From Anthoceros angustus (taxonomy: Eukaryota > Plantae > Anthocerotophyta), in assembly GCA_010909165.1 (NCBI GenBank), contig VJWM01000016.1, positions 62,001 through 126,000 on the forward strand: DNA of 64,000 bases. The letters run 5' to 3'. Both the position numbers and the translations under genes were made by a program. Positions 5,625 to 53,398 of the stretch are shown piece after piece. Under the pieces are notes generated by a model. It was given only the letters and a program-made list of their open reading frames with translations, was not told the DNA's origin and searched no databases. Position 1 is the stretch's first letter; each line of letters opens with the position of its first letter.

Positions 5625-5862
5625 AATATAATAAGATATATGTAACTTGGCGCTATTGTGCTCTGTGTTGTGTGGCAGACCTTGGCCTGCCCTTGTATGA
5701 CGATGTGGATCTTAACATTTGGGTGAAAAGAATTCTATTCGTTATGCATTGTCCCGTACGCAAAGTCCATAACCTACCCATGACTTGATTGGGAAGTAAA
5801 ACCTTGTCACAAGATCAAGTTAACTATACAGCAACACTTCTCGCGCTGTTTGTGTAGGTGTC

Positions 5863-6302
5863 CTAATTATAAGTTCATATCATAAGATGGCTACTCTTAC
5901 CTTTGCAATACCGTACACCCCACTTCATCAACTATATGGCTATGGGTCTATGGAACCCAAGAATTTGGTTCTCATATGCTTGCCCTGTCCCTAATAGAGT
6001 CTTTGTGTCTCAATTATAAGTTCATATCACAAGATGGCGTGCACGTCTACTCTTACCTTTTGCAATACTGTACACCCCACTTCATGAACTATATGGCTAT
6101 GGGTCTATGGAACCCAAGAATTTGGTTCTCATATGCTTGCCCTGTCCCTAATAGAGTCTTTGTGTCTCAATTATAAGTTCATATCACAAGATGGCGTGCG
6201 TCTACTCTTACCTTTGCAATCACCCCACTTCATGAACTATATGGCTATGGGTCTATGGAACCCAAGAATTTGGTTCTCATATGCTTGCCCTGTCCCTAAT
6301 AG
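5863..6302. repeat. Tandem repeat, ~157-bp unit x ~3, partly homologous to 12575-12630
   Basis: ATGGCTATGGGTCTATGGAACCCAAGAATTTGGTTCTCATATGCTTGCCCTGTCCCTAATAGA recurs at ~5935, ~6092 and ~6241. Confidence 0.9.
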
Positions 6303-7784
6303 ACGCTTCAATCTCACCGCAGAGTGAATACGGCACTTTAGCAGCGGAGCGCTAAAACACATACATAAGTGACCCTGTTGGAATGACCAGTGCCATGTAA
6401 GTATGCGATCCTCACATGGAATGACCAGTGCCATAAAAATATGCGATCCTCACACCAGACCCGCATTGGAGGATGCAGCCAGAGGCACTAAGTAATCCTA
6501 CTAGAAAGGGTAGTCCTACTGGAAAGGGTAGCCTATGTTACAGTCATTGTTCCAATTTTATGTTACACTTTCATATTGCAACATGCTTTGGAGGCTTGGT
6601 ATTAAGTCGGTCACCTCCTTCCCATGTCATGCCACCATATTAACACGAACTTGGCTCTTTTTCCAACCACCTCACCCTCATAATTACACTCCTTTCTCAC
6701 AAGCATTGTTTATGATTTCCCACATGCACTTGCAACATGACTGTAAGAAGGAGCCCCTCTCTCTCCCCCTATCATCCTCCCCTCTTTATTACACCCCTTT
6801 GGAGAACTATTTGTTTATGTGTCACCTTGCCCTCTTCATTACACCCTTTCTTGACAACTATTTGTTTATGTCGTCCACACCAAAACATCATTGTAACATA
6901 TAACATGGACAGCAACTCTCATATTTTCCTCCTACCTCGTAATCACATTTTTTTTCCTACCTCATAACTTCATCGTTGCTTTATCAATTGCTTTATCACT
7001 GTTTTTTTACTTGACCATAGCTATTTATGGATTGAAGACTAATTGTTCTTTATTTCAACCATTCCTACAATGATAATAAATGTGCACCCTTCCATTGTGC
7101 ACTTATATCGATGATAAAGTACGGGATATGTATATACTTTTATGTAGATAGATATAGGGGATACATATATGTACATAAATATATATTATATAATATTATT
7201 AGATATAATTATATATTATATTAATGATTTTATTTTATATAAAGATATAAATTACTTATTCATTCTAGCCACCAGTATAACTTCTATCCCTTGCCCCTAA
7301 CCAAGTATTCCTATATGTATTCCATAATATTATGTTACACTATATAATATCATATTTTATTCCATAATAATATGCTACACTACATAATATTTTAGTATTA
7401 ATTATATATTATATTAAGGTATAAACATCAATGCTGAACATTAAAATTTAGCTTAGCACCCGTCAATACTCACTATTAGTGTAGACTAATATCAAACCCT
7501 AAACTTCCTAGTTCTAAGAAATATGCCTTGACCAACCCACTATATTCTATTTTAGTTAGAGCATTAAGATCTCTGGATTTATTTGTATGAAAAACCTAGA
7601 CATATTATTATTTGCTTATGTTTAGGTTCATGGGTGCGGGGCTCACTTTGCGTTCGGAGGGTTTTCCCCTTCCACAGCACAAGGTGGGCACTCCTGGCGA
7701 TCCAGAGCTAATTAGAACGCAGCGCAAGCGGGTAAGAGCCTTCCAAGCTCCCGTCACTTACGTGTGAGTAAGGCAAAGTAAGCC

Positions 7785-8798
7785 ATGGCATCTTGCTGGA
7801 GATGCGGGATTTGCTTGCCTCACAACTTAGTTGCATTTGTGATGGATGTCATCCAGATACAATCGGCCATATGCGCAGGTTGTATGGGCGTTATGTGAGG
7901 AAGCATGGTGTGCTAACACTCACTCCATCGTTGTCTTCTCCTGGTTGTGAGGGCACGAGGCGGCTTGATGATCAAAGCATCCATGTTCATCGTGCAAGAG
8001 GGATGAGAGTTGAAGTCCTCCTGGCGAGCATGAACCCCGGCCCTTCGGCATGGCTTAGGTAATGCTAAGTGTTGTTGGTCCTGCATGTGCTCGGAGTGAG
8101 GCAAGCAGAAGAACATTGTAGCAACCTCATGGGTGACTCACCGTGTTGTTGACATGACGTCCAGACGGGGATACCATTCGGAGACAGCGTCATTGTCACA
8201 TTTACGGGAATAAGCGGCAGGGTGGATCAGCCAAAGGTTGTCCACCCCAAGAGACCGATTGATGGCTTGACCTGTTCCAGGCGTGAGGTAGGTGGGAGGG
8301 AACAATAATGCCAATCCCAATAGCATCACCATTTCCTTGGCCATGCATTGAAGTAGCACTTTTGGTGGCGGCAGGTGAGCAGGCAAAGGCTCTGAGGTGC
8401 AATGGGCTCAAAAGCGTTTTACCTCGGCCACTTCGTTCTTCACTCGCTTCTGGGTGTACAATTTCTGTCCTATGTCATTCATGGAAGCCTCTGGCAAGTA
8501 AGTAAGTACGTTGTAATATGAGATGGCATGCACCTTGCCTTGGTTGTCCCCTAGAAAGAAAGCTCATTTCATTATTGGGGAGGGACACTGCAGGAACCGC
8601 ACACCTGACAAGATCAGACAATGCGAGCGGGAAGAGTTGGAGGCCCGGTGCGGGAAGATGCTGGCTCAAGTCATCCAATTGCTCCAACCCAGGCTGGTGG
8701 TGGGTGTAGGCGGCTATGCCAGGCGATGCGGTGTGCCGGATGTGGTGCACGTGCAGGTGGGGCAAATCATGCATCCAAGCTCAGCCAATCCCAAAGGC
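7785..8798 (+). pseudogene. SMUG1: SMUG1-type (family 3) uracil-DNA glycosylase pseudogene, ~5 exons (approx. 7785-7907, 8000-8058, 8165-8287, 8375-8497, 8594-8798)
   Basis: The spliced reading gives EVLLASMNPGP(fs)FGMA* | TGIPFGD...HPKRPIDGLTCSRRE | VSRQRL*G(fs)WAQKRF...FFTRFWVYNFCPMSFMEASGK | NRTPDKI...LVVGVGGYA...IMHPSSANP. This is collinear with the SMUG1 motifs GMNPGPFGMAQTGVPFG, HPKRP, EVSGxRxWG, NxCP, NxTP, VVGVG and HPSPxNP. Lesions: TAG 8056, TGA 8393 and several frameshifts. Confidence 0.88.
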
Positions 8799-9085
8799 AG
8801 GGAAAGGGGAAGGGGAGGAGGGGAAGAGGCAAGGAGGAAAAGGGGGAGAGGGATCTGAGGTAGAGGAGGAGGAGGAAGAGGAGGTAGAGGGTGAGAGGGA
8901 AACAAAGAGGAAGGGGAGGAGGAGGGGGAGAGGAAAAGGGAAAGGGAAAGGGAAAGGAAGAGGGAAGGGCAATCTCGAGTCCCAAAGATGAGGAGGGCGA
9001 GAGGGAAGGAGGAGGAGGGAAAAGCGGAAGGGCAGGAGGGGAAGATTATAAGGAGGAGGAGGGAGAGAGGGAAAAGAAGAGTGAC
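8799..9085. repeat. Polypurine (GA-rich) low-complexity tract
   Basis: Nearly pure G/A runs (GGAGGAGGAAGAGG, GGGAAAGGGAAAGG). Confidence 0.85.
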
Positions 9086-9104
9086 ATGACGTTGGTGAAG
9101 GGAT

Positions 9105-9553
9105 GGTGGCAGGGCGGGATCATGTGTACAGCCGCAAGCAGATCATGTACTTGCAGAGCTTTGCAAGGTCAGGCCAAGACCTGTTCCAATGCTATGATTT
9201 AAAATTTCCTCTCAATTTTCCAGCTGTTGCGTAACTAGTGCGATGTGATGTTAGAGAATGCGATGGTAGCATGGCGGGGTGTCTCGTGTACATGTACAGC
9301 TCCAAGTAGTTGCAAGGTGAGGCCAAGACCCTTTCCATGCTGTGATTTCCCATCTCAAATTTTCAGCTAATGCGTAACCAAACTGTGATGTGAAGTAAGA
9401 GAAGGCGATGGTAGAATGGCGGGGTCTCATATACATGTACTGCAAGCGGCTGCAAGGTGAGGCCAAGACTCATTCCATGCTGTGATTTCTTATCTCAAAA
9501 TTTTAGTTGATGTGTAACCAGACTGTGATGTGACGTTAGAGAAGGCGATGCTA
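9105..9553. repeat. Diverged tandem repeat, ~147-bp unit x3
   Basis: TGCAAGGT(C/G)AGGCCAAGAC...TTCCA(A)TGCT(A/G)TGATTT recurs at ~9162, ~9311 and ~9451. Confidence 0.85.
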
Positions 9554-10619
9554 GCAGGGGGGGTTTTGGGTGAGCGAGGGAGTGAGGCGATTACCGCAGC
9601 GAGAGATGTGTGGAGGCGAATCGATGTCGGGTCTTGTACTCGAAGGGGCGAGTGTCTTGTACCCGGCAACTAATAGACATGAGTCGAGTGTGGACAACAA
9701 AAACAACATAGGGGGAGTGGCAGGGACGGGTGGCGGAGAGAGGACAGGAGTGGAGCAGCCACCAGCAACCATGGTTGGGGCAGGGGCAAAAAGGTGCGTA
9801 ACGGACATAAGGCACTTGCCTAAGGGGAGAGAGAAGGAGGGAGGACTAGGGGAGGAACATTTAGGTGCATTAAAAAAGAGCCGGGGGTAGTCGATAGTTC
9901 GTAGCTAAGGGGGGGGACACGTAATGGCGGTGACGCAGAGGAGAACATGGAGGCAGAAGAGGAGGCTGTCGATGAAATTCAGGACGTCCCTTTTTAGGAG
10001 GCACCGGATAAAGAAAAACAGGTTGGTGTGCTAGAAATTTGGGGTATAAAGATGCGTTGAGATTTTCACAAATGGTAAATACAAAGTACCATATAATGAA
10101 TATGTACAGACTAGCATACGGATATAATCTCTATGATGTACATATTTATTATATATAAAATCTAATATGAATATATATCACTTGAAAGATATGACACTAT
10201 ATATATCACTATAAATAATATACATACAATATAAAAGATATATTGATACGGATATTTATATGTGGTAATATCATGAATATATTAATGATAACTACTAAGT
10301 AAAATATGATATTCTATAGAATAAAAATAAAAAGATAAATAGATGAGGAGGAGGTTCGATCATATCATAAAACTTCATAAAATTTTTCTTGTAACACTTT
10401 AATATTATAATCTTGTTATAATATTGAGAGAGAGCTTATTGCAATATTAAGAGAGTGGATAAAAATACCTCTCATAATTGAGACACATAATGTGGTTTCA
10501 AGCTAAAGTATAAGGGACTTAAAACGTGTTACATAACCCCAAAATTGCAACATGTTACATCCAAAGGGTCCAAATCTTAACATTTATGTAACATACGCAG
10601 GCGTTTCTAATAGGGTACA

Positions 10620-12273
10620 AGGAGCACAAATAGTACTCAAGGGAGGAGGTGGTGACATCCAGCTCTGTGCATCATTCTGGGAAAGACCAGGGAAGAGAGC
10701 TGCTGAAACACGTCACTGGCTAGAGATAGGAGCCAAGGGAGGAGGATCTCACCTCGCCTGCAGTGCATACATGCCCACCCTCTGCAAGCAACCCAGCTGG
10801 GTGGAGATAAATCAACACCACTGCATGGCTCACACCTTCACCAGTACACAAGCAAGCTTTACACAAGGACAAAATACAACCTTCTGCTTACTTTGTGCCC
10901 GCAGCCATTTCAGCATCGATCCTTCTGGTCTGCAGCCAGTACTGATGCATCGACGACATTGAAAGCCACCCAACTGCCTGCGCAGGCTCAGTACGACCCT
11001 CAGACAATAGGCTGATAGTATGAGGAAAGAAAAACTTGTTCAACACGCACTCTCCTCCCATTGGAATATACAGGGTCAGGAATGTTTCCAAACTACACAA
11101 GAACAGTGGGGCTGGTAGCAGACACTCACATGTCCAGCCACAGAAAATGTTGCGGACAGAGGGAATTGCTAGAACGGCTACATGAATTCTTCTGACATCT
11201 GGTTGCACAGTCTCAAGCTATTTGCGCTGAATGATCCTGGCATGCAGTTCCAGTATTCAACAGGCCTGCAGAACATACACGGATGACACAAGTTGGTGCA
11301 ACCGATTTCGCATGCATGATGGGCTGCCACATCACCTTGCGCATATTCTAACCCGCCCCTCCTGTTGCATTCTTGCATACATAGACAGTGCATTTTGACT
11401 CACCCCTGTTCAGGATATACTGCTGTCAACGGGTTTCCAGTTCCCCACATCTCTTGTAGGGAATCCGTCAAATCCCCTCAGATGCGTGCCTGTTCCAAGT
11501 ACTGACACTTTGCATACGGGTCAACCAAGGAGTCTCTTCACCATCTGGAACATCAGCTTCCATTCACTTGCACCAGATTCGCTAGAGAACCTCCTGCCTA
11601 AATGGACTCCCACTCAAGGAAGGGCAGGTTCTCTGCAGCCCCTCCTTGTCACCACAACCTTACTGCAATCAATATCCCTGCAGGAATACATAGAAGCCAC
11701 TGGGCAACATGCAGTAACCCAACAACCCTTTCTCTGATCACTCACAAGCCTCTGGAGCAGGAGAACACAAACAATGTCCTCTCCTCCTGCGCCAGCCCTG
11801 GCGGGAACCGGAGACCCCGCCCGAGCTGGAGCTCGTACCAGCGATCAGACGCGGGGGTCGTAGGCAGAGGAGAGCAGGGCCGGACTCCCACTCCGACTCG
11901 CCGAGTCGTAAGCCTGCCACCAACAACATCAGTTCCCCCCTCCTGCCATCCATTCCAGCCGCTCCTGCAACAACGAGCACGCCGAATCCACGGCCGCCTT
12001 CCATGCTCAGCGCCCCGCGCGCGACCGCACCAGGCTCACAAGCGGCAGCCGATCTTGGATCTTGGCTACAATGTCCTCCGGCAGCTCTGTCACCGCTGCT
12101 TCGCTATCGCTACAGGGAATCTCCATCTCCATCCTGCCTTCAGATGCTGGATAACGAAGCACGGACTCTGCTGCCGGGTTCTTATTAGGGTACCCTGGCA
12201 AACAGCAAGCTTGGCCTTCGGCAAAGAAAACAAGGACCGCGGGTGCCACGCTTGGTTTGAGAACGAGACTCAC
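10620..12273 (-). pseudogene. Degenerate F-box protein gene
   Basis: F-box motif LPEDIVAKIQDRLPLVSLVRSRA at ~12015-12085. Downstream coding-like sequence is broken by stops and frameshifts, and its 3' part is homologous to 12745-13090. Confidence 0.55.
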
Positions 12274-12574: not shown

Positions 12575-13090
12575 ATTGCCATGGCCCTACGGAACCCAAG
12601 CATTTGGTTCTCATACGCTTGCCCTGCCCCGGTAGAAGCTTCAATCCCACCAGGCTGTAGGGTGAATCTCGCACTGCTGAAATGACCAGTGCCATGACAG
12701 TATGCGATCCACTCAACCGAACCACATTCGAGGATGCAGCCAGAGGAGCACAATTATTGATCCAAAGAGAAGGAGGTACCGGTGGTGGTATCCCTCACTA
12801 CCCCATTCTGGAAAAGACCTGGGACAAGAGCTGATGAAGTCACATGTAACTGGCTAGGGGTAAGGGCAAGGGAAGCAGGATCTCGCCTCGCCAGTGCATG
12901 CCCATCCTCTGCAAGCAACCCAGCTTGATGGAGAACTCCACTGCGTGGCTCGCACCTTCGCCCGCACACAGGCAAGCATACAACCTTGTTGCTTATTTCG
13001 TGCTCACAGCCATTTCAGCATCCATCCTTTTGGTCTTCTACAGCCCAGTTACAATGATGCATCGACGACCTTCAAATCCACCCAACGCAG
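12575..13090 (-). repeat. Paralogous fragment of the 3' region of the F-box pseudogene (uninterrupted version of 6240-6490 plus 10620-10980)
   Basis: Shared strings include GGAACCCAAG(A/C)ATTTGGTTCTCATA, ATGACCAGTGCCAT, GAGGATGCAGCCAGAGG and CTCTGCAAGCAACCCAGCT. Confidence 0.75.
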
Positions 13091-14011
13091 GCTTCCATTT
13101 CTACCCAGAGGTGCAGCGTACATCACGAACTAACATAACATCTGTTCTAGGGTTGCAGGGACAGGTCAAGTGAAGTGCACACAAAGGTCCTGCAGGTCAA
13201 GGTCAGGTCAGGTGACATGTGATCCAGATATGCGGGCTGCTAGCAGTAAACGTAAACCGGGCCAGGAGGACAACACTGTGCAGCAGTTGGAGGAAATGTA
13301 TGCATGTACCTACTGGAGAAGCAGCTCCCGGCAACAATGGGGGGCCAACCGTGACGTGCTTGCCGAGTTCGAGCACAATCGTTGTACTGGACTGCACTGC
13401 ACTGCTGGTTGTGTGCGTGTGTGTGTTTGCTTGATATTTTGATTTGATGATAATTATTGATGAGCCTCACGCTTGATGCATCGATCCCCCTCCTCGCAAG
13501 CCGAAACCAGCTTCACATCTGCGATGCATCCACAAACATTTTCCCCACAAGATTTGAGCCTGACGCACACAGCAGTGAGCCTGTGAGGAAAGGGTACGAG
13601 AAGAAGTCCCATGAGAGCCTGAGTTAGTGAGGGCTAATCCGAGCCCAAGCCCGATCCCCTCTCTCAAAAGAACCAGGAGCGGTAATGGCGCCCCCACAGT
13701 TCCCATAGTGCCATTTGCCAGCCACTCGCAAGTTGCGAGGTGGCTCTGGTCCTGGCTGCGCAGTCAAAGATGGGAGCCAATTTTGTGTTGTCCGCATGTC
13801 AGGAATGGCGGATTCATTACAATTAATATATGTATTTGATGTGGTTTGAAGGGCCTGACTCGCATGCGAGCGAACATGCCTTTGTGCTGCCCCTCGACTA
13901 CATCGTCTCGTGCCGCGGCCCGCGACCGAGACCGGCCGGGGCTGGGATATCCCTGCCTCTTCACGACGCGGAGGCGAAGACCAACCAGCCAGCGGAGTCG
14001 AGCTCGTGGGG

Positions 14012-15346
14012 ATGGCGACCATGGAGGCTGCCTTCCGCGCCGGGGCGATGGCCGCGAGGTGGCCGCCGCCCTCGGGCTCGCCCTCGCCCGACCCCGGGGC
14101 CTGCAGGCTCAGGCTCAGGCTGCGGCTGCGAGTGAAGCTGGGGCTGGATGTATTGCCGATGCGCATCGCCTTCGCGCAGGGGCGGGGGAGGAAGGCGGCG
14201 GTGGCCACGGCCATGGCGGGCGGCGGCAGCGGCACGCGCACCACGGCCGTGCCCGGCTTCACGCAGCTCGGGGAGGAGGTTCCGGAGGGGCTGACGCTCG
14301 GGGAGGTGGTGCGGTCGCTGCCCAAGGAGGTGTTCGAGGTGGACCACCGGAAGGCGTTCCGGAGCGTGGCCATCACGGTGGGCGCGGTGGCGGCGGGGTA
14401 CGCGGCGCTGGCCGTGGCGCCGGCCTGGCTCTACCCGGGGGTGTACGCCTTCCTGGGGACGGCGGTGACGGGGATGTTCGTGGTGGGGCACGACTGCGGC
14501 CACAACTCCTTCTCCCGATCGCAGCTGGTGAACGACGTGGTGGGCACGCTCATGATGGCGCCGCTCATGTACCCGTTCGAGGCGTGGCGGATCAAGCACA
14601 ACGCGCACCACGCGCACACCAACAAGCTGGTGATGGACACGGCGTGGCAGCCCTTCCGCCCGCACCACTTCCGGAGTGCCGGGCCCGGCCCGCGCCTGCT
14701 CATGCGCGCGGCCATGGGCCCCTTTTGGTGGGCGGCGTCCATCGGCCACTGGCTGCTCTGGCACTTCGACGTCGCCAAGTTCCGGCCCGCCGAGCGGGCC
14801 AGGGTCGCTGTGAGCCTGGCGGCGGTGGCGGCGTTCGGGCTGCTGGTCCTGGCCCCGCTGCTGCTGCTCGCGGGCCCCGTGGCCTTCGTCAAGTGGTGGC
14901 TGCTGCCTTGGCTGGGATTCCACTTCTGGATGAGCACCTTCACGCTGCTGCACCACACGGCGCCCCACATCCCCTTCAAGCGCGCCAGGGAGTGGGACGC
15001 CGCCGCCGCGCAGCTCAACGGGACCGTGCACTGCGACTACCCGGCCTGGGTCGACTTCCTCTGCCACGACATCAGCGTGCACATCCCGCACCACATCTCC
15101 TCCAGGATCCCCAGCTACAACCTCCGCAAGGCCTACCGATCGCTGCAGCAAAACTGGGATCGCCACCTCAACAAGGCTGTCTTCGGCGTGCCCCTCATCG
15201 TCACTGTCCTCTCCCACTGCAATCTCTTCGATGTGGAGGAGGGCAAGTGGGTGCCCTTCCCGGCTCGGGGCCGGGGCCGGGGCCGCCACCGCCCTCCTCA
15301 TGAAGCCATCACCTCCACTGATTCCCACTCCGCACCGAACCTGTAA
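14012..15346 (+). CDS. FAD6: Plastid-type omega-6 (delta-12) fatty acid desaturase, FAD6-like, intronless (444 aa from ATG 14012)
   Basis: Three His boxes HDCGH, HNAHH and HIPHH. FAD6-like segments GFTQLGEEVPEGLTLGEVVRSLPKEVFE, DTAWQP, FWMSTFT and QLNGTVHCDYP. The Ala/Arg-rich N-terminus resembles a transit peptide. Confidence 0.92.
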   Translation: MATMEAAFRAGAMAARWPPPSGSPSPDPGACRLRLRLRLRVKLGLDVLPMRIAFAQGRGRKAAVATAMAGGGSGTRTTAVPGFTQLGEEVPEGLTLGEVVRSLPKEVFEVDHRKAFRSVAITVGAVAAGYAALAVAPAWLYPGVYAFLGTAVTGMFVVGHDCGHNSFSRSQLVNDVVGTLMMAPLMYPFEAWRIKHNAHHAHTNKLVMDTAWQPFRPHHFRSAGPGPRLLMRAAMGPFWWAASIGHWLLWHFDVAKFRPAERARVAVSLAAVAAFGLLVLAPLLLLAGPVAFVKWWLLPWLGFHFWMSTFTLLHHTAPHIPFKRAREWDAAAAQLNGTVHCDYPAWVDFLCHDISVHIPHHISSRIPSYNLRKAYRSLQQNWDRHLNKAVFGVPLIVTVLSHCNLFDVEEGKWVPFPARGRGRGRHRPPHEAITSTDSHSAPNL

Positions 15347-18639: not shown

Positions 18640-19024
18640 TGTCACATGGGTGACCATCCCGAATCCTCAGCCGGCACAGTCACAAGGGGCAGGAACCTTG
18701 GCCGTAAGTTGGGGACCTAGGTCAGAGTGGGGGCAGCTAGGGCAACCCCTTTTTCGTCCGAGGAGAGGCAGGCCTGGCCCGGATCGTAGCTCGGCATGCC
18801 GTTCGTAATAAGGCCTCGTAAACTAGGTTAACCCGAAATACATAGATGAATAGTCGGTTTAGATAAATAATTAGCTTAGTATAGTTCCAACCGTATTAGT
18901 TAGGAAATACTTCTTGACACATAACTTGAATACCCTATATGTACACTACATCACAGCAACAAAGACAGCTTGTTCCAGGCTCATTTGCTTCCAAGGTCCA
19001 CAGCACGGATCGAGGCTTGCAACA
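18640..19024 (+). repeat. 5' LTR (385 bp)
   Basis: TGTCACATGGGTGACC...GAGGCTTGCAACA; matches 26946-27337 except for a noisy ~100-bp patch. Confidence 0.95.
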
Positions 19025-19026
19025 TT

Positions 19027-19038
19027 TGGTATCAGAGC
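19027..19038 (+). promoter_or_regulatory. Primer-binding site complementary to initiator tRNA-Met
   Basis: TGGTATCAGAGC, 2 nt after the 5' LTR. Confidence 0.9.
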
Positions 19039-19097
19039 GCGCGATCCCCAGGCATCCAGATCTTTGCCAACGGGAATCTGTGGGCTATAGGCCAAGG

Positions 19098-21925
19098 ATG
19101 AGTGACCGACTGTCCCCACGGGAGGTGGAGATGCAAATCTCCAGCGGCAGCGAGGACGACCTGCTCTCCGAAGGGATTGCTGATCGAGTGCGCCTCAGAG
19201 GTAGGCAGCGCCCACCTCCCTCTCGCCGCGATCTGCTGACAGAAGTCCGGGTGCTCGGACGGGAGCCTGCAGTAGAAACGGAGGGTCAGATTCGGAGGCG
19301 GAACAAGATCGCCCTCCGGCGGCAAGCGGCAGCAGAACGAGCAGCGGCCAGCTTACCGGAGGAAGGAGGCGAGACGGACGCCGCGGGTGGAATGGCGGAT
19401 TATGCCACCGATCCGCCCGCGGCCCGGGCGAGCCGCGCAAAGCCCGAGGTGGCGCGTCCTCCCTCACAACCGCCGACATCCGGCCTCCTGTTCAGACCAC
19501 GCCCGACGAAGAGCAACAAGAACCGGACGCGGGTGGAAGCCCGAGGTGGCGGCGCCCGCCGTTGGCGATCCCGCACTCGGATCTCGAAAACTGTGAAAGG
19601 TCAGGAATTCCACGCCTGTCGAGGACACCGGATGCAGGTTGTAGAGTCAGCCCTCAATCGGGTGGAAGCCCGATGGGAGGAAGGGCAGAGCCGCCTCGAG
19701 CGCCAGCTCCAAGGCGTGCTCGAGCCCTCGACGGCTGCGCATCGCTCACTGCGGCACCAATGATCGCTCCCCATCCGGCACTGCCAGCGCCCGTGAAGAC
19801 TCACCGCTTGGCAACAGCCCCATGCTGCATCACCGGATCGGTGAATCGTGAGAAGAGGAGAAGCGGCGAGTAGCAAACCACGACCAACCCGAGTATGGAC
19901 GAAGATCACCTCCGAAAGTTGGTGGTCGAACCGCCGGAGAAGGGAGAACAAGGACATCAAAGCCCTTGTCCGCCGCCTGCAACTCCTCCGCTATGAGCAC
20001 TGGGAGGCACAAAAGGGTAAGGCTTACCAAGACCAAGTGGAATCGCTGGGGGAGGATCCCATCTTCAAACCGCGAGCACAGCTGGACAAAGAGCTCCAAA
20101 GGAAGATCAGAACCACGACATTCAACGGGAATGAAAAAGACGCTCAAGCGGTGCATGACTGGCTCGATAAGCTGGACAAATACCTGAGTGCCACAGAAAA
20201 GGATGACCAGCAGAAGATCCAATTTTGTGTGATGTCCCTTGAGGGATACGCCTATCGATGGTGGCGGCAGCGGGAGAAGCAGGTCGAGTTAGGCATGGAG
20301 GCCCCGATCTACACCTGGCCCACGTTCCGCCAGGTCTTCTTGGAACACTTCCTGCCAGTAAACCATCGCCGGGAATTATATCACCAGTTCTGGAAAATCC
20401 AACAGCAAGGCACTGTGCAGGAGTACTGCGACAAATTTCTACAACTCACACTAGACATGCCTCGCCTCGACGAGGAACAGAAGATTGAGAAATTCATTGA
20501 CGGACTCAAGTCCGACCTCAGCCAGATCAACCACCAATCCGGACCTGGTGGATGCCATGAAGGCGCCATAAATTATGGTAGTAACAAGTACAAGCGAACG
20601 CAGCCGGCCCCGCCAAGCCTGATGGGGTCGTCATGCGTGAGTGCAGAGAAAAGCCCGTCTTCAAGATCCTTACTAAGAGGAAAGGAAAAATACCATGAGC
20701 GACGATGTGTTTTGCACCTCGACCGAAACGCCTCAAAACTCCCTCACCGCGACTTCATCAAATGGCTGAAGAGACAGCCACACGAACCCGCCACATCGGC
20801 ACCGGCGTGAAGAGTGGCCACTCATCAGATCAAGAGGTGGCCGACACCAAATCGTCGCAGCCTCCTCCAAACTCGCACGGTGCGAAATCGCTCCCCATCC
20901 GGCACTGCCAGCGCCCGCCGTGAAGACTCACCGCTTGGCATAACGACAGCCTGTCGACTCGGTCAAGCGGTCGGAATCGTGAGAAGGGCACCAGCAAACC
21001 AGACCCAACCCGGAGTATGGACGAAGATCACCTCCGAAAGTTGGTGGTCGAACTGCTGCCGGGAGAAGGGGAGAACAAGGACATCAAAGCCCTTGTCCGC
21101 CGCCTGCAACTCCTCCGCTATGAGCACTGGGAGGCACAAAAGGGTAAGGCTTACCAAGACCAAGTGGAATCGCTGGGGGAGGATCCCATCTTCAAACCGC
21201 GAGCACAGCTGGACAAAGAGCTCCAAAGGAAGATCAGAACCACGACATTCAACGGGAATGAAAAAGACGCTCAAGCGGTGCATGACTGGCGATAAAATTT
21301 GGACAAATACGGTGCCATGAAAGGATGACCAGCAGAAGATCCAATTTTGTGTGATGTCCCTTGAGGGATACGCCTATCGATGGTGGCGGCGGAGAAGCAG
21401 GTCGAGTTAGGCATGGGCCCGATCTACACACCACGTTCGCGTGTCTTCTTGGAACACTTCTCGCCAAGAAACCATCGCCGGAATTATATCACCGCCTGAA
21501 AATCCAACGGAAGGCACTGTGCGAAATCTGCGACAAATTTCTACAACTCACACATTGCCTCGCCTCGACGAGGAACAGAAGATTGAGAAATTCATTGACG
21601 GACTCAAGTCCGACCTCCGCGCAGACGTCAACCAGACCAATCCCGGGACCCTGGTGGATGCCATGAAGACTGCCATAAATTATGGTAGTAACAAGTACAA
21701 GCAGCAGAACGCAGCCGGCCCTGCCAAGCCCAGATGGGGTCAGTCGTCTGTGAGTGCAGCCGAGAAAAAGCCCGTCTTCAAGATCCTTACGGAAGAGGAA
21801 AGGAAAAAATACCATGAGCGACGCATGTGTTTTACCTCGGGCACTCCAAACCCGCCTCACCGCGACTTCATCAAATGGTCAAGGAGACAGGCCACTACAC
21901 CCCGCCGGCACCAGCGTGAAGAGTG
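19098..21925 (+). pseudogene. Retrotransposon gag region (frameshifted, tandemly duplicated with ~1.1 kb offset)
   Basis: Retrotrans_gag-like LEGYAYRWW...TWPTFRQVFLEHF...QQGTVQEYCDKF...FIDGLK; a second copy spans ~20890-21920. Confidence 0.85.
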
Positions 21926-24900
21926 GCCACCGTTAAGATCGAAGAGGTGGCCGACACCCCGAAATCGGTCGCAGCCTCCTCCAAACTGCCCGCAGCCCGA
22001 TCCAGTGCCGACTTGAACCATGTGCCCATCAAACTGCAGGTGAAGCTGCACGGCGTCACGGCCACGGGACTGTTGGACAGGGGCGCCAGCCACCACTACA
22101 TGTCCCACGCGGCCGCGCTCAGGGCTGGCCTCCCCATACAAGACACGGGACATGAGTCCACGGTAGTGACGGCTCTGGACAGCAGGGACACGGGCAAGGA
22201 ATTCAACACCTCGTCAGTGGTTACCTTCCCGGGCGGTTATGAGGAGACTCTTCAGTTCACCGTTATGCCTACGTTGTGCCATGATCTCATTATTGGTAAG
22301 CCCTGGCTCGCCCAGCACTCCGGCCAGCTGAACATCGACTGGGCGAACAACATCGTCAGGTTAGCCACAGGACATGAGCAGCACGTCATGTCAGGAGACA
22401 AGTACGTGCCGGACAAACATCTGTTTGCAGTCTCAGCCTTAAATAAAGCAACTGCCCCGGGCAGCTTCCTGTATGTCGCAAGGCTAAAGAGAGTCTTACC
22501 TCTGGAGGGCACCCCCGAGTCCCGTGCAGCCAAGGCGCAGGAGGCCGAGGATGCCCTACCTGCCGAAATGAAGGAGCTGCTGCATGACTATGCAGACCTC
22601 TTCGCCGTGCCCACGGAGCTGCCGCCGAGCCATAGATCACGCTATCGAGCTCATCCCAGGCCACAAGCCCGTCAGCATCCCGCCCTACAGGACGTCAGCA
22701 GTGGAAAACGAGGAGATTAAGAGACAGGTAGACGAATTCCTTCAACAAGGGTTCGTCAGGGCTTCGGTCTCACCTTTCGGCGGCCCCGTCCTGCTGGTAG
22801 GAAAACCCGATGGGGGATGGCGTCTCTGCATCGATTACAGGGGCCTCAATCGAGCCACAGTCAGAAACGTGTATCAGATGCCCCGGGTGGATGAGATATT
22901 AGATCAACTACACGGAGCGAAATTTTTCACGAAGATTGACTTACGTTCAGGGTTTCACCAAATCCGCATCCGAGAGGGGCAGTACATTGCGTTGGTAACG
23001 CCACGCCGGTTTTGTGTAATGCCGTTTGGGCTCACAAACGCGCCCGCCACCTTTCAGTGTCTGATGCAGGAGCTCCTCCGGCCCCTCCTCGGCCATGGTG
23101 TGGAAGTCTTCTTGGACGACATACTCATATACACAGCGGATCCTGCCAGTCACTACAAGCTGGTTAGACAAGTATTTGAGCTGCTCAAGACACACAGGCT
23201 GTGCGCCAAACGCAGCAAGTGTGTATTCTTCCAAACAGAGTGCGAGTACCTGGGCCATATAATCAGCGGGGACGGCATTCGGGTGGACACCAGAAAGATC
23301 CGAGCCATCTCCGACTGGCCGTTACCACAAGACCTCACTCAGCTCCGAGGGTTCCTAGGTATGGCCGGATTTTACCGAAGATTCGTCAAAGACTTCAGTA
23401 AGATGGCTCTCCCTCTGACAGACGCACTCCGCCAGTCTGCAACCAAGACATTCCAGTTGGGTCAAGACGGGCACCAGGCCTTTCTCAAGCTCAAGGCGGC
23501 CCTCTGCACTGCCCCAATCCTCGCCGTAGCGAACCCACACTTACCTTATGTGGTGCACACAGATGCAAGCGACTACGCCGTTGGAGCGGTCCTCTCCCAA
23601 GATGGCCGAGTCATCGCTTATGAGTCGAAGAAGTTACAGGGGGCGCAGGTGAACTACGCCGTCCACGACAAGGAAATGTTCGCAATCGTCCATGCGCTCA
23701 AGCTCGGAGACACTACTTGCTTTGGGCTCACAAACGCCGCCACCTTCGATGTCGATGCAGAGCTCCTCCGGCCCCTCCTCGGCCATGGTGGAAGTCTTCG
23801 ACGACATACTCATATACACTGGATCCCGCCACTACCATGTCGGTTAGACAAGTATTTGAGCACTCAAGACACACAGTGTCGTAACGCAGCAAGTGTGTAT
23901 TCTTCCAAACAGTCAGTACAGGCCATATAATCAGCGGGGACGGCATTCGGGTGGACACCAGAAAGATCCGAGCCATCTCCGACTGGCCGTTACCACAAGA
24001 CCTCACTCAGCTCCGAGGGTTCCTAGGTATGGCCGGATTTTACCGAAGATTCGTCAAAGACTTCAGTAAGATGGCTCTCCCTCGGCACGCACTCGCATCA
24101 ACCAAGACATTCCAGTTGGGTCAAGACGGGCACCAGGCCTTTCTCAAGCTCAAGGCGGCCCTCTGCACTGCCCCAATCCTCGCCGTAGCGAACCCACACT
24201 TACCTTATGTGGTGCACACAGATGCAAGCGACTACGCCGTTGGAGCGGTCCTCTCCCAAGATGGCCGAGTCATCGCTTATGAGTCGAAGAAGTTACAGGG
24301 GGCGCAGGTGAACTACGCCGTCCACGACAAGGAAATGTTCGCAATCGTCCATGCGCTCAAGCTCTGGAGACACTACTTGCTGGGCCAGCGCTTCACCTGC
24401 CACACCGACCATCATTCATTGCAACATTTCTTCAGTCAGCCCAATTTGAATGCACGCCAACGACGCTGGGCAGAATACCTGGCAGATTTCAACTTCGATA
24501 TCCGCTATGTCACAGGGCCCTCGAATGTTGTTGCGGACGCTCTCAGTCGCCGGGCGTGCACCCTCATGACGACTCAGTTAGACACCATCCGCCAGGTACG
24601 GGAAGCCCTCCCACAGGATAGTACCTTGTGGCAAGTGTACCAGCAGTTACTCTCAGATGTGCAGACGGGACACCCCACGCAGCTCATGCAAGAGTACATG
24701 ATCAAGGACGCTTGCCTGTATAGGAAGGGACGCTTGGTCATCCCTTCGCACCTCACAGGCCTCAAGACCGCAATCCTCCATGATCTCCATGATAGCCCCA
24801 TGGCAGGGCATCTCGGCGTGGACAAAACCTATGCCCGCGCCAAGGATCATTTCTACTGGGATGGCCTCCGTGCAGACGCAATCAACTGGGTCCGGTCTTG

Positions 24901-26945
24901 CACCTCCGCCGCAGCCAAAACCGACAATCGAAAAGCTTGAGCAAGTTGCTTCCCTACAAATTCCCCTTTGAGGTTGAATCCATTTCCATGGATTTCATTA
25001 CCCACCTGCCCAGGACCAGGTCGGGAAAGGATAGCATCTGGGTCGTTATGGATCGGCTCTCCAAGACCTGCCATTTTGTCCCAACCACTGGTACGATCAC
25101 GGCACCCAAGTTGGCTCAGCTGTTCCTACGGGAGATATTCAGATTGCATGGAATTCCCGCCAGCATTGTCTCAGATCGAGACACCAAGTTTACAGCAGGC
25201 TTCTGGAAATGTTTCACAGAATCCCTCGGCATCAGCCAGAACTTATCTTCGGCTTGCCATCCTGAGTCGGATGGGCAAACCGAAAAACAGAACCAAGTTC
25301 TTGAAGACATGCTCAGGCACTTCACACATGAGAAGCAAAGCAATTGGGAGGCTATGCTACCTCTCCTCGAATACGCTTACAATACCTCAAAACACGCCGC
25401 CACAGGGGTGGCGCCCTTCAAGCTCCTTTATGGCTCATGCCCGCCACCTCCCGGCCTCTGGCCCTCTGCCCAAGAAAAATGGTCCAGCGCCGCAAAACTG
25501 GCAGAGGATGTGTATCACGAGGTTCAGCAAGCGCGCAAGAAATTGTCTGCAGCACAGAACCGGTACAGCAAGTGCGCCAACAAACACCGCAGAGATATTA
25601 CTTACACAGTTGGGCAACAGGTATGGCTCCGCATACGCCCTCACCGGTATCCATCGCTCATCCAGCCCAAGGGGAAGCTCTCCTACAGGTTCGCTGGTCC
25701 ATTTGCGATCACCAAGCAAATCAATCCGGTGGCGTATCAGCTCGCACTTCCTGCAGACTGGAAGATCTGCAAGACCTTCCATGTGTCGATGCTCAAACCA
25801 GTGGTCTCTCGCGCCCCGCATCTCTGCCAGGACGTACCACCATCGCCCTCACCGGTATCCCATGGCTCGAGTCCCACCACACAACCCAAGACTCACGGCC
25901 CCAGCTCCACCGGCCGACCACCGCCATTTTGTACACGCTCACCCACGACAAGAACCCGGCCTCACGGTCTCGCCGGCCAAGCACCACGGCTGTGATCTCA
26001 CGGCCCCAGCTCCACCCGACAGTAACCCGCCGGCCGACCACCGCCATGGCAAGGGCGTTGTTTCACACTCGCCCCACGCCGCTCCACGCCCGCATAACGC
26101 CGACCTCTTCGCCAACTCACCGCCACCACTACCCGCACAACGCGAATCGACGACACTAGCCCGACACCGGCCCCACGTGGCCCCGACCGCATCCTCCAGG
26201 TTAGACACCGCAAGCTTCGTAATCGAACTCGATCGATTGTCTGCGGCACAGGCAGTGCAAGTGCGCCAACAAACACCGCAGAGATATTACTTACGGTTGG
26301 GCAGTATGGCTCACGCCGCCCTCACCATTATCCATCGCTCATCCGGAGGAAGCTCTCCTCTGAGTTCGCTGGTCCATTTGCGATCACCAAATCAATCCGG
26401 TGGCGTGCTCATTTCGCACTTCCTGCGGTGGAAGATGCAAGACCTTCCCGATGCTCAAACGGTGGTCTCGCGCCCGCATCTCGGGCGTACCACCATGGTG
26501 AGACCGTCAGGCGGTATCCCATGGCCAGTCTGCCACAACCCGGCCTCACGGTCTCGCCGGCCAGCACCAGCTGGCTAGCGATCGCGAGCTCCACCGGCAG
26601 CACCGGCCGACCACCGCCATGGCAAGGCGTTGTTTCCACACTTCGCCCACGCCCACGCCCCTGTGATCGGACCTCGGCCGGCCCTCTTCGCCAACCAGCG
26701 TCCACCGGCCCTACACCGCTGGCGTGCGAATCGACGACACTGGCAGGCCGCAGGCCCCGCGTGGCCCCGACCGCATCCTCCGGGTTAGACACAGCCGTGT
26801 CGAACTCGATCGATTGTCGGTAGGATGGAGCAACGAAGCCGACACCTTGGCCACCTGGGAACCGGCTATCTGGTGTCGACAATTCCCTCAGCTCCAGCAA
26901 CAGCTCCAAGGTCTGGAGGACCAGCCCTCGCTCAGTGGGGGAGAA
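21926..26945 (+). pseudogene. Retrotransposon pol (PR-RT-RH-IN-chromodomain), frameshifted with two internal duplications
   Basis: ORFs 21923..22720 (PR), 22584..23930 (RT/RH), 23951..24940 (RH and IN zinc finger), 24898..25995 (IN core) and 26724..27029 (chromodomain-like). Confidence 0.9.
26934..26945 (+). promoter_or_regulatory. Polypurine tract
   Basis: AGTGGGGGAGAA-like purine run immediately before the 3' LTR. Confidence 0.85.
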
Positions 26946-27337
26946 TGTCACATGGGTGACCATCCCGAATCCTCAGCCGGCACAGTCACAAGGGGCAGGA
27001 ACCTTGGCCGTAAGTTGGGGACCAGCTAGGTCAGAAAGGTGGGGGGCAGCTAACCCCTTTTTCGCGTCCGAGCGGAGGCGAGCTCCTACGGCCGGATCGT
27101 ATTTCGACATCTTGGTTCGTAATAAGGCCTCGTAAACTAGGTTAACCCAAATACATAGATGAATAGTCGGTTTAGATAAATAATTAGCTTAGTATAGTTC
27201 CAACCGTATTAGTTAGGAAATACTTCTTGACACATAACTTGAATACCCTATATGTACACTACATCACAGCAACAAAGACAGCTTGTTCCAGGCTCATTTG
27301 CTTCCAAGGTCCACAGCACGGATCGAGGCTTGCAACA
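26946..27337 (+). repeat. 3' LTR (392 bp)
   Basis: Direct repeat of 18640-19024, followed by TSD ATGAC. Confidence 0.95.
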
Positions 27338-34071: not shown

Positions 34072-35971
34072 TCATGGTAAGGATTGAGAAGAGCTTTGAA
34101 GCTGGGTCCGATTTGGATGTTTCCTTTCCCTGAGCCTGGCATGCAAGGGATTGAGCATTTTCACGGTGAAGAGGGTGGTGTGGGTCATGTCCACGACTTG
34201 GCCGTCTTTGGCAGGAAGCCATTGGAACGCCTGCACCAGCCTACCAATGGTCAGCTGTGCTTGCAGCAAGGCGACGCTGAAGCCGGGGCAAATTCTCCTT
34301 CCAGCGCCGAAGGGGACCATTGTGAACCTGGAACCTCGTCTTCCAGTCACGTCCACGTCCCAGCCTTGCAAAAATCTCTCCGGATCGAACACCTCCGGAT
34401 CCTCCCACATCTCCTTGTCCACCGAAATTGCGTGGAGGCAGACGAGGATTTCCGCATTCTTGGGCACACGGTACTCGCCCAAGGTGGCGTCTCTCAGTGC
34501 GGCATGCGGCAATGTGAAGTAGGACGGGGAATGGAGCCGGAGCGTCTCCAGCACCACAGCCCGCAGATAGGGCAGGTGCGGCAAATGGCACTTGGACACG
34601 GGAGCGTCCCCGCACACATCCCAGATTTCCTGGGCCAGCCGGGTCTGCATTGCGGGATTCCTCACCATCTCGGCCATGGCGAACTCCATGGTGATGGCCG
34701 TCGTGTCGCTGCCCGCGTTGAGGACCTCGTTGCACAGAAGCATGATGTCGGTGTCGTCCGCGATGTCCATCTCTCCCCGCTCCTGCGCTGCCAGGAGGGT
34801 GTCCACGTAGTCGCGATCGGAGTCCTCCACCGCCGCAAGGCCCGCGGAAAGCCTCCTCCGCTGCCTGTGCTGCTCGATGATGGGCAGCATGATCTGGGAC
34901 ACCTTGGCCCTCACTCGTTTGCATCGCCTGTAATGCGAGGGGTTGACGAAAAGGTGAAGCAAGGGAAGGTAGTCCCCCATGTTGGGCCCTGCCACCTTCA
35001 GCGTCTCCTTCAACGTCTCTCTGAACACGATCACCTCCTCGTCCTCGAATGTCTGCATGAAGTTCACAACGGAGTCATCATCAGTTGGTTCACTCCTGAC
35101 GATACGATGGTGATGGATTACCGAGAGTTTGAGATCGACGAATTCTCGGTCAGGAAGTCGAGATTACCTTGCCGAAGCAGACGTGGAGGAGAATTCTGAA
35201 GCTGACGATCAACAGGTTGTCCATGACCGGCACAGCCTCTTCAGGCCTTTCCACAGCGTGCGTCCTCAGCTTCCGCACCATATCCTCGATCTGAGCGTGT
35301 CTGACGGGAGCGCAGTCGGCCACTTTGGCGGGGCTCAGCACCGAGCTGACGAGGCTCCTTCTCAGCGCTCTCCACCTCGGCCCGTAGGGCGATGTGTTGA
35401 TATTCCGATGATTATTTGTCAGGAAAATCCTGGATCTCCGATGCGGCCTCGACGCAAACAGGGAGCCCTCCTTGAGCAGAACGTCCCTGGCCTCTGCAGC
35501 CCCGGTGACGATGATGGTGGGCACGAAACCGAGCCAGACAGTGAAGACGGGGCCGTATTGTCTGGACCACCTCTCCACGTGGGCACTCTCGTTCGGGTTT
35601 CCTTCGTACAGACTGCCGAAGAGAAAGTGGCCCTTGGGCCCTGGCGGCAGTGCCCGGCGCCGGAGCCCTTGCGGCTTCCAGAAGGGCCACACAGAATTCA
35701 TGAAATGCAAGACCAACAGGCCTAGGGCGGCAGTCAGACAAACCAGGAGGGCGGAGGCCCATGGTGCCCTGGCCATGGCAGGGCTGTGCACAAGTCCAGC
35801 GGCTCTCGCAGTCAGCAGAAAGGCATTCCCACGGCCGATGTCAGCAAACATGGCTGAAACATTGGCGGCCACCATGCGAGAAGCATTTCCCTCAACACCA
35901 GTGCTGCACAACAGCAACCCTGCCAAGTCCATCGTACCAGAGGGCAGCCTGTATGCAAGCTCCGACGTCAT
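34072..35971 (-). CDS. Cytochrome P450, CYP71 clan, CYP77/CYP89-like; complement(join(34072..35052,35168..35971))
   Basis: Membrane anchor plus LPPGP, FASRP, NINTSPYGPRWRALRR, I-helix NAGSDTT, ETLR, PERF and heme motif PFGAGRRICPG. A phase-0 GT-AG intron joins CFGK|TFED. Confidence 0.93.
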
Positions 35972-41845: not shown

Positions 41846-43720
41846 TCAACAGCGAAATCTCCTTTCCCTGACCCTGGCGTGCAAAGGGTTGAGCATTTTG
41901 ACAGTGAAGAGGGTGGTGTGGGTGATGTCCACTGCATGGCCATGTTTGGCAGGAAGCCACTGGAACGCCTGGACCAGTCTGCCTATTATCAGCTGCGCTT
42001 GCAGCAAGGCAAAGCTGATGCCAGGGCACATTCTCCTACCAGCGCCGAAGGGGATCATGCTGAGCTTGGACCCTCTGCTTCCAGTCAAGTCCACATCCCA
42101 ACCTTGCAAAAACCTGTCGGGATTGAACACGTCGGGATTCTCCCAGGTTTCCCTGTCCATGCCGATAGACTGGACGCAGACGAGGATCTCTGCATTCTTG
42201 GGCACATAGTAGTCGCCCAAGGTAGCGTCTCTCGATGCGGCATGTGGCAGTGTGAAGTAGGATGGAGAATGGAGCCGGAGCGTTTCCAGCACCACAGCCC
42301 GTAGGTAGGGCAGCTGCTGCACATGGGACTGAGACACAGGCGCGTCCCCGCACACGTTCCAGATTTCCTGGGCCAGCCGGGTCTGCATGGCGGGATTTCT
42401 CACCATCTCGGCCATGGCGAACTCCATGGTGATGGCCGTCGTGTCGTTGCCCGCATTCAGCACCTCGTTGCACAGAAGCATGATGTCGGTATCGTCCGCG
42501 ATGTCCATCTCTCCCCGCTCCTGCGCTGCCAGGAGAGAGTGCACGTAGTCCGAGTCCTCCACTGCAGCACGGCCCGCGGAAAGCCTCCTCCTCTGCCTGT
42601 GCTGCTCGATGATGGGCAGCATGATCTGGGCCACTTTGGCCCTCGCTTCTTTGCATCGCCTGTAATGCGAAGGGTTGAGGATGAGGTGAAGCAAGGGAAG
42701 GTAGTCCCCCAAGTTGGGCCCTGCCACCTTCAGAGTCTCCTTCATTGCTTCTCTGAAGACGATCACCTTCTCCTCCTCGAATGTCTGCATGAATTCAGTA
42801 ACGCACAGCAAACTCGGTCGGTGATATCATTGGTTTGTGAACTTCGTGAAATGCACATGATAAGCTCACGACATAGACCAATTGTGTGACAAAATTTCAG
42901 ATAGATTACGTACCTGACCAAAGCACACGTGGAGGAGAATGTTGAAGCTGACCACCAACAGGTTGTCGATGACAGGCACAGCCTCTTCAGGCCGTTCCAC
43001 AGCGTGCTTCCTCAGCTTCTGCACCATATCCTCGATGTGAGCGTGTCTAAACGGAGCGGACTTGGCCACTTTTGTGGGGCTAAGTGCCGAGCTGACGAGG
43101 TTCTTTTTCAGCGCTCTCCACCTCGGCCCGTATGGAGAGGTATTGATATTCCGATGATTATTGGTCAAGAAAATCCTGGATTTTCGATGCGGCCTAGAAG
43201 CAAAGAGGGAGCCCTCCTTCACCAAAACCTCCCTGGCCTCTGCTGCTCCGGTCACGATGATGGTGGGCACAAAGCCGAGCCAGACAGTGATGACGGGGCC
43301 GTAGTGTTTGGCCCATCTCTCCACAGCGGCACTCTCGTTCGGCTTTCGGTGGTACAGGCTGCCGAAGAGGAAATGGCCCTTGGGTCCTGGAGGCAAGTTT
43401 TGCCTGAACCCAAACTTCCAGAACGGAAACACAGAATTCATGAAATGCAAGACCAAAATGACGGCAGTCAAACCAACCAGCAAAGTGGAGGCCCATCGTG
43501 CACTGGCCATGGAAGAGCTGTGCACATGTCCAGCAGCATGTGCTGTCAGAAAAGCATTCTCATGGCTATTTCCAGCAAGCAGGCCTGAAGCATGCCGTGC
43601 AGACACGTTGCTCATCACCACCATGCGTGAGGCATTTCCATCAACACAAATGTTACAGGCCAGCAAACTGGTAAAGTCCATTCTATTAGAGGGCAGCCAG
43701 TCTACAAGCTCCATCGTCAT
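41846..43720 (-). CDS. Cytochrome P450, CYP77/CYP89-like tandem paralog; complement(join(41846..42784,42914..43720))
   Basis: Highly similar to 34072-35971 with the same intron position (CFGQ|TFEE); motifs NAGNDTT, ETLR, PDRF and PFGAGRRMCPG. Confidence 0.93.
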
Positions 43721-51292: not shown

Positions 51293-53398
51293 ATGGGTGC
51301 CCATTATTTGTGGGCGTGGTTTGTGGCGGCGCTGCTGCTGCTTGTGGTGGTGGTGGTGGTTGAAGGAAGGGCGTGCTGAAGCGGCGCCGGGAGGCGCGAT
51401 GCCGCCCACGGCCCCGGGCCCAGGCCGCTTCCCCGGGCGCCGCCCCTCCCGCTGGCCGACTTCGACTTCCATCTGCGAGACCCGAACTCGCCCGTCGCCT
51501 TCCTTGCCGACCTGGTGACCCGGGTCGGCCGGATCCTGAGCCTGCGCCTGGGCGCCTTCCCATCCATCCTCGTCGCAAAGGCAAGCATCGCGGAGGAGGC
51601 GCTGCGGGAGGAGAAGTACGCCACCGTCTTCCACTCCCAGCTCCACATGCCCCCGTGGAGGCGCCTGGTCGGAAGCCACGCCCACTGCGTGCCCAACCAG
51701 GATCTCCGCTGGCAGGCCATCCGCTGCGGCGCCGCCAGGGTAATCAAGCAACGCAAACTCCAACTCCCTCGCTGTGTGTTCTTGACGAATCCATCGGCCT
51801 GGGGAGCAGCTTGCCTGCTTGCTATGGTCGACCTGTGTTGGAACAACCTTGGACTGATGTATCCTTGTGCGGTGTACGTGTGCAGCTCATGATGTCGCAG
51901 GACAGCCTGGCCACATGTACCGCCCACAACCCTCGGAGGCAGGCGGCCATCGCTCACGCCCTGGCCATGTTCGCGCAGCGGGCCGGCCAGCTGGGAGCTG
52001 TGGTGACCGTGATGGACGTCTTCGGGCCGATGGTATGCGACCTCATGCTGCTGCTCTGCTTCGGGGAGTACCCGGTGCAGCTGGGATCAGCGCTAGCGTC
52101 GGTCCAAGTGCGGGCGGTGCTGGAGGCTATGGTGACGACCGGCACCGCGTCCCAGGCGAACCCCTTGCTCTGCGCCCTGGACTGGATTCAAGGGGTCCGC
52201 CTCCTCCACCGCGTCCACACCACCATCAAGCAGCGGAGCTACAACTTAATGCTGGCCACCTTCACGTCTGCGGTTCTGCCGCTCATCGAGCGATGCCGCA
52301 CCCGACACGGCATCCCCGCTCACATCCCCGACCAGGAGGCGCCTACCCGGACCCCGACCCCGACCCCGACCCCGACGGCAGCCCCCGGCAGCGGAAGCAG
52401 TGACACTGACTCGGACGAGTCCGACGAAGATCAAGAGGCCGGGCTCCTTCCCGAGGGGCGAGCAGGGGAGGGCAGCACGTTCGAATTCGATGTTTCAGCC
52501 GAGGACTTCTCGCTGAAGCCATCGGCCCCGGTTGATCCCCAGCTTGTGGCCTTCGTCTCGGAGATCTCCTCGCACGGGTCGGGAATGTGTGGGCTCGGGG
52601 CCGAATCCCCGTATCTCATCCCCTTCCTGTATGCAGGTCGAGGGATGCGGATGACGGCGGAAGAAACGGTGGCAGTGTGTCTGGAGTTTTTGCAGGCAGG
52701 CTACTTGACCATGACGCGTGCTCTGGAATGCGCAATGTCCCATCTTATCAACAACCCAGAAATTCAAGAGAAGCTGTTCATGGAGATCAGCAGTGTTGTT
52801 GGTACCACTAGACCCGTCGTCGAGACCGACCTGCGGAATCTCCACTATCTGGATGCTCTTGTGCGAGAGACACTGCGACTCAACCCTCCGGTGCCTCTCA
52901 TGACTGTCCCGTCCCCGACCAGAGCATGCGAGCTTGCAGGGTTCAACATCCCTCAGAACGCGACGATGCAGGTCCATCTCAAGGCCATCGGTGAGTGCCT
53001 GGAATACCACAGAAACGTCTGCAACTTTCAATGTTTTTATTTTCCGATGTCGCTTAGGTTCTGGAGTCACGAGTCATGTCCGTTGTTTGTAAGCTCACCG
53101 GATTCCATGTACAGGCCAGGACCCTGAGGTGTGGAATGACCCAGATCGCTTCATTCCAGAGAGATTCCTGGTGGATTCCAGCGCAGAACTCGGTCGCAGC
53201 ATGCTCCCCTTCGGCGTCGGCAAGATCTCATGTCCCGCCAAGAAACTGGCAGCTGTGAGTCTCAAGTTGGCGATTGCCCGCATGGTGCAACGCTTCCGCT
53301 GGAACCCACCTCCGGGGGATGAGCGTGTGCCGTTGGGAGTGCCAGGCAACCAAATCTCCAGGTCCTCTGTCAAAGCATCCATTACTTCGCGGACCTGA
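51293..53398 (+). pseudogene. Divergent cytochrome P450 with one in-frame TGA at codon 29; join(51293..51739,51886..52990,53115..53398)
   Basis: Anchor MGAHYLWAWFVAALLLLVVVVVV, then TGA at 51377-51379, then the same frame continues (…ILSLRLGAFPSILV…). GT-AG introns in phase 0 and 1. Motifs ETLR, PERF, heme PFGVGKISCPA and I-helix QAGYLT. Confidence 0.8.

Follow-up and report, generated by a model that had tools for sequence, protein, structure and literature searches.

Does a DNA transposon in a plant genome carry its own base-excision enzyme, or has it picked up part of an ordinary host gene? The question is raised by a block of ~4.1 kb in a hornwort window (the whole 64-kb stretch of DNA that was analysed, to which all positions refer), in which exons resembling those of the uracil-DNA glycosylase (UDG) SMUG1 lie between inverted ends. 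The original prediction allowed for either answer.

A true insertion with CACTA-like ends

That the block interrupts sequence found uninterrupted nearby had been predicted and is borne out: both of its flanks align, at 74–89% identity, to one continuous stretch at 12575–13086. Since the flanks are continuous in this paralog, the ~4.1-kb block is a true insertion. Its limits and structural parts are as follows.

6496–10615 (model B, preferred; alternative 6486–10619, model A), unstranded: non-autonomous element with terminal inverted repeats (TIRs), missing from the paralog at 12575–13086
12575–13086, plus strand: paralogous empty site, outside the element; uninterrupted match to both flanks
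6483–6495, plus strand: left junction; AGG at 6483–6485 (model A) or TAA at 6493–6495 (model B)
10616–10622, plus strand: right junction; TAC at 10616–10618 (model B) or AGG at 10620–10622 (model A)
6496–6542, plus strand: left TIR, beginning TCCTA (one change from CCCTA); with an 18-bp tandem duplication (6492–6535); 9/13 to the Tgm1 TIR
10587–10615, minus strand: right TIR, beginning CCCTA on the minus strand; 11/13 to the Tgm1 TIR, 21/29 to the left end
6536–7600, unstranded: left subterminal arm, AT-rich; TGTTACA at 6536+, 6561+, 6898− and 7333+
10050–10593, unstranded: right subterminal arm, AT-rich; TGTTACA at 10396−, 10527+, 10553+ and 10593−
8796–9100, plus strand: purine-rich low-complexity tract, 3′ of the truncated gene
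9161–9554, plus strand: internal tandem repeat, unit of ~140–149 bp, 2.7 copies, ~80% matches

Two models were considered for the exact boundaries. In model A (6486–10619), a perfect AGG/AGG duplication flanks the block and its removal restores the paralog cleanly; the outer ends do not pair. In model B (6496–10615), CCCTA-type ends do pair, the flanks read TAA/TAC (2/3 identical) and ~14 flank bases are left over. Model B is preferred since the ends pair there. A target duplication of 3 bp is likely but ambiguous: both models give this length, with an imperfect copy in model B. A CACTA pentamer is present at 6486, with no TAGTG partner. The left junction also harbors a cluster of tandem duplications (157 bp ×2.7 at 95%, 5891–6303; 38 bp ×2, 6379–6454; 18 bp ×2.5, 6492–6535), by which the element boundary is blurred.

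Outside the element, the segments 10620–12198 (minus strand) and 5858–6485 appear to be parts of one decayed minus-strand gene split by the insertion. An F-box-like start was noticed by eye at 12010–12110, where Pfam gave no match. The 3′ part of this gene is duplicated at 12575–13086, and the frame there also has a stop.

The imperfect inverted ends of the original prediction are confirmed at 6514–6542 versus 10587–10615, with 21 of 29 positions (72%) complementary (among 1000 random window pairs, 2 did as well); the match begins at 6514 because of the 18-bp duplication within the left end. Its AT-rich arms around a GC-richer core are likewise found, with GC contents of 0.22–0.27 at 7001–7500 and 10001–10500 against 0.44–0.57 in the core. 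The right end, which lies within 4 bp of the junction, agrees at 11 of 13 positions with the TIR of soybean Tgm1 (reference taken from Table 2 of PMC3193017), and is one of only 2 sites, out of ~128,000 in the window, that do so. At 61053 lies a third CCCTA-like site, which lacks both motif and partner. Furthermore, eight of the 11 window copies of TGTTACA fall within the block, four per arm and in both orientations. This 4+4 arrangement was matched by 0 of 500 shuffles and by 2 of 474 real segment pairs, even with the best motif chosen post hoc. Longer inverted matches between the arms were not above shuffles, and long degenerate inverted arms were rejected on that ground.

How should such an element be classified? 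Strict CACTA termini (5′-CACTA...TAGTG-3′) are absent, with CCCTA on the right and TCCTA on the left, and we therefore class the element as Pack-TYPE, its ends being CACTA-like only. As in Pack-TYPE elements, TIRs stand at the insertion limits (which the empty paralog sets independently), the interior is intron-bearing and of host type, and transposase matches are absent, none having been found by Pfam in six internal ORFs. The subterminal direct and inverted short repeats of CACTA/EnSpm elements are also present, in the form of TGTTACA. CACTA elements are described as having TIRs, subterminal repeats, a 3-bp target site duplication (TSD) and internal tandem arrays (PMC8978399). No mention of CCCTA termini was found in the literature searched.

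No sibling element was found in the 64-kb window; tblastx self-matches within it were rejected as sum-statistic noise. A pattern combining TIR and motif gave 25 matches in metagenomes. The comparison covered the 12 of these on JGI (Ga-prefixed) contigs, as distinct from 13 others, among them those labelled human gut; the 12 showed no further similarity and were taken as chance.

It might be argued that the SMUG1 fragment never moved as cargo, but was duplicated or inserted independently into a resident element, as gap-repair filler or a segmental copy. The many local duplications (of 157, 38 and 18 bp, above) would suit such a history, as would the lack of a second cargo-bearing copy within the window. 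Against this, the fragment lies cleanly between both arms, which is the layout of Pack elements, and an informal look around it revealed no second junction duplication. We consider an independent insertion unlikely.

Identity and decay of the SMUG1 exons

Three-frame translation of 7560–8900 on the plus strand yielded SMUG1 segments in collinear order, which were then searched and phylogenetically placed exon by exon, rather than as a joined peptide. Six exon pieces, all on the plus strand, are separated by five introns of 87–106 bp. Lesions were called against Sphagnum and Cryptomeria SMUG1.

7678–7763: exon 1, decayed, start approximate; 3′ end in the APV-x-V segment; donor in phase 2, like that of mosses
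7857–7907: exon 2, frameshifted
7998–8058: exon 3, with catalytic motif 1; CAA as acceptor, one nt lost, stop at 8056–8058
8165–8287: exon 4, open frame; PDB E = 4e-7; land-plant clade
8375–8497: exon 5, stop at 8393–8395; 4 extra nt at 8399–8402
8594–8795: exon 6, NRTPDK to HPSS motif; PDB E = 1.2e-11; 58% identity to Cryptomeria; land-plant clade

The SMUG1 identity claimed for the gene holds exon by exon. Among PDB sequences, 8595–8798 matched Geobacter SMUG1 at E = 1.2e-11 and vertebrate (human-type) SMUG1 at ~7e-6, while 8165–8287 matched the bacterial protein (Geobacter) at E = 4e-7 and vertebrate SMUG1 at 5e-5; with these two queries, no significant protein other than SMUG1 was returned from the PDB. 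The PDB sequences were more informative than Pfam, whose sole match to single exons was a weak UDG (E = 0.023). The ORF at 8523–8855, used as a query among proteins of similar length only, found no homologues, a negative that carries no weight given this restriction. By similarity to solved SMUG1 proteins, we assign the pieces at 7678–8795 to UDG family 3 (SMUG1).

Two features of the predicted gene need amendment. First, the multi-exon structure stands, with six exon pieces in place of the five exons proposed, the first being strongly decayed. Second, the SMUG1 motifs do occur in order, but they are not intact. Stops occur twice and frameshifts at least three times, one splice acceptor is lost, and both gene ends are missing. 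In exon 3, one nucleotide is lost within the NPGPFG motif near 8041, the stop at 8056–8058 closes the exon, and the splice acceptor reads CAA (7995–7997); in exon 6, HPSS stands in place of HPSP. The two catalytic motifs, GMNPGP and HPSP, are hence not intact in one open frame, motif 1 being frameshifted and followed by a stop, with the second stop and HPSS beyond. The homology ends near 8795, just past HPSS, where the purine-rich tract starts, and no counterpart of the N-terminal exon or of the ~20 C-terminal residues of plant SMUG1 was recognised in the block. Judged by its reading frame, the SMUG1 copy in the element is a dead pseudogene rather than an enzyme. The truncations of the gene could be later than the capture.

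C:G to T:A transitions account for both stops, for the lost acceptor and for the change at the left end, when moss SMUG1 or the terminal consensus is taken as reference. These four sites would fit methylated, silenced DNA, although they are suggestive only.

Origin of the SMUG1 fragment

A search with the last exon retrieved 101 proteins, with Chlorokybus, Spirogloea and a fern-type transcript among the best. Using the fern-type transcript as query for plant SMUG1, intact proteins were found in Adiantum, Sphagnum, Ceratodon, Physcomitrium, Cryptomeria and Spirogloea, and a partial one in Ceratopteris; Chlorokybus, from the first search, has an intact SMUG1 as well. There is one locus in Physcomitrium, one in Cryptomeria and about one per Sphagnum assembly. 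In the Chlorokybus model, the N-terminal part is long and unrelated, and PF01541 is present as an additional domain in two SMUG1 proteins from NCBI.

An older review holds UDG family 3 to be absent from plants (PMC6728418), in agreement with the original prediction, in which SMUG1 was given as described from animals and some bacteria and as considered absent from Arabidopsis. SMUG1 was already known from mosses, ferns and gymnosperms, although the biochemistry of the plant protein has yet to be characterised (PMC10573277). We found no paper combining SMUG1 with hornwort, nor one joining SMUG1, Physcomitrium and uracil.

The phylogeny called for in the original prediction, with bacterial, algal, bryophyte and animal SMUG1, follows that of plants. 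In the 53-protein tree, Spirogloea is followed by mosses and then by conifers plus ferns (starred support), land plants are supported at 100/97, and the green-plant clade takes in Chlorokybus and Spirogloea; with two animal sequences only, the deep origin of this clade is beyond the resolution of the tree. Exons 4, 5 (3′ part) and 6, each added alone, fell within the land-plant SMUG1 clade (SH-aLRT 97), in which their position is not resolvable as the fragments cover 13–26% of columns. The best exon identities are 58–78% to plants and at most 49–59% to non-plants.

The gene structure leads to the same place. When genomic loci were compared, all five introns of the fragment coincided in position and phase with introns of Ceratodon and Sphagnum SMUG1. 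Moss SMUG1 has two further introns, inside the window exons 4 and 6, which are absent here; this difference reflects either loss in this lineage or gain in mosses. The five shared introns, together with the land-plant placement, point to genomic DNA of a vertically inherited host gene, and not to a cDNA or to a bacterial gene imported recently. In other words, the ordinary SMUG1 inherited vertically across streptophytes, which the original prediction had set against its own proposal, is what we find: intact homologues, a species-like tree and moss-shared introns.

The NRTPDK segment had been noted as bacterial-looking. The likeness is real, and the best PDB matches are indeed bacterial rather than vertebrate, as would be expected had the element recently brought in a bacterial SMUG1. 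However, the likeness is a trait of the whole plant clade and is no sign of recent transfer into the element. The higher identities to plants and a green-plant clade that includes Chlorokybus and Spirogloea speak against recent horizontal gain, and for the copy here it is refuted by the five spliceosomal introns common to the fragment and mosses; we give it next to no credence. The bacterial resemblance of plant SMUG1 has been published (PMC10573277), and an ancient transfer into the ancestor of green plants, as suggested there, may have taken place.

Gene capture or accessory enzyme

With the host gene in view, we return to the idea that a transposon family keeps SMUG1 as an accessory gene, ridding its DNA of U or 5hmU, and that the copy here is a decayed member. 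It has its attractions: SMUG1 does lie within a genuine TIR element, six exons were captured together, and fungi provide a precedent for base-modifying cargo (PMC12730594). Several observations argue otherwise. First, SMUG1 is truncated at both ends. Second, its relatives look like ordinary host genes, given their locus counts in Physcomitrium, Cryptomeria and Sphagnum. Third, an arrangement like that of the fungal TET/JBP genes is not seen for the copy here, the gene being dead and a transposase match lacking. Fourth, the anti-silencing logic is weak on chemistry, because deamination turns 5-methylcytosine into thymine, a base that SMUG1 does not remove from DNA. With a dead, truncated gene, no transposase match and a vertically inherited host SMUG1, a family equipped with its own base-excision enzyme is not borne out, and we regard it as very improbable. 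Much the same low weight goes to a variant in which a CCCTA-ended family adopted the host SMUG1 and keeps intact accessory copies, the locus here being a dead derivative.

The shared introns, the land-plant placement and the TIR-bounded insertion support the other half of the original prediction, in which a host SMUG1 underwent Pack-type capture. We propose that ~1.1–1.2 kb of the host SMUG1, introns included, was picked up by a non-autonomous DNA transposon of the cut-and-paste kind, whose ends are CACTA-like (CCCTA). The capture would have taken place at the DNA level, probably via aberrant excision of neighbouring elements, the route described for Arabidopsis Pack-CACTA, where neighbouring insertions are involved (PMC6379663; PMC13317346). 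Mobilised in trans by a CCCTA-family transposase, the element would then have inserted here, after which the fragment presumably decayed without selection; captured gene fragments are usually pseudogenes (PMC13317346). The element is thus most probably an ordinary Pack-type gene capture with a dead host SMUG1 fragment inside; its membership in a CCCTA family and its donor gene are putative. The cargo makes no enzyme and gives the element no service.

By itself, the element is of little weight, being one more Pack-type capture. It does bring a CACTA-like family whose ends read CCCTA, in a hornwort, into the range of such capture, and it implies that this lineage has a SMUG1 gene, with introns conserved back to the split from mosses. 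The object worth study is the intact host SMUG1, not the fragment, and the CCCTA-ended family may merit one consolidated description.

Other features of the window

Beyond the element, the following were observed.

13910–15346, plus strand: one GC-rich ORF that encodes a fatty-acid desaturase (Pfam FA_desaturase, E = 6e-34)
18833–27337: LTR retrotransposon of Gypsy type, judged by its gag, protease, RT and integrase ORFs; direct repeats 99% identical and 8.3 kb apart; internal duplications
34072–35971 and 41846–43927, minus strand: tandem cytochrome P450 genes, 7.7 kb apart and 84–91% identical
51373–53127, minus strand: third P450-like ORF
54808–58744 and 59569–63627: 100%-identical duplications, with spacings of 3.28 and 3.42 kb; either very recent duplication or an assembly artefact

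Comparison with known systems

The closest counterparts are Pack-CACTA/Pack-TYPE elements, such as Arabidopsis Pack-CACTA1a (PMC6379663) and those of a rice and maize survey (PMC8903248). Like them, the element here is non-autonomous and has short TIRs, a probable 3-bp TSD and captured gene DNA inside; unlike them, it has CCCTA/TCCTA rather than CACTA ends, resides in a non-flowering host and is decayed, and its mobility is presumed. With CACTA/EnSpm elements (Tgm1, En1; PMC3193017), it shares the Tgm1-like right end, a subterminal motif in two orientations and an internal tandem repeat, but the second base is C instead of A, the left end reaches 9/13 only and there is no transposase. The DNA transposons of fungi that encode TET/JBP (PMC12730594) also contain a gene for a base-processing enzyme; there, however, the genes recur in families and are linked to transposases, whereas here one dead host fragment is found, with no transposase. 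Finally, the fragment resembles land-plant SMUG1 of mosses, ferns and gymnosperms (PMC10573277) in clade, in five intron positions and in motif order, and differs in being a truncated pseudogene without the two additional moss introns.
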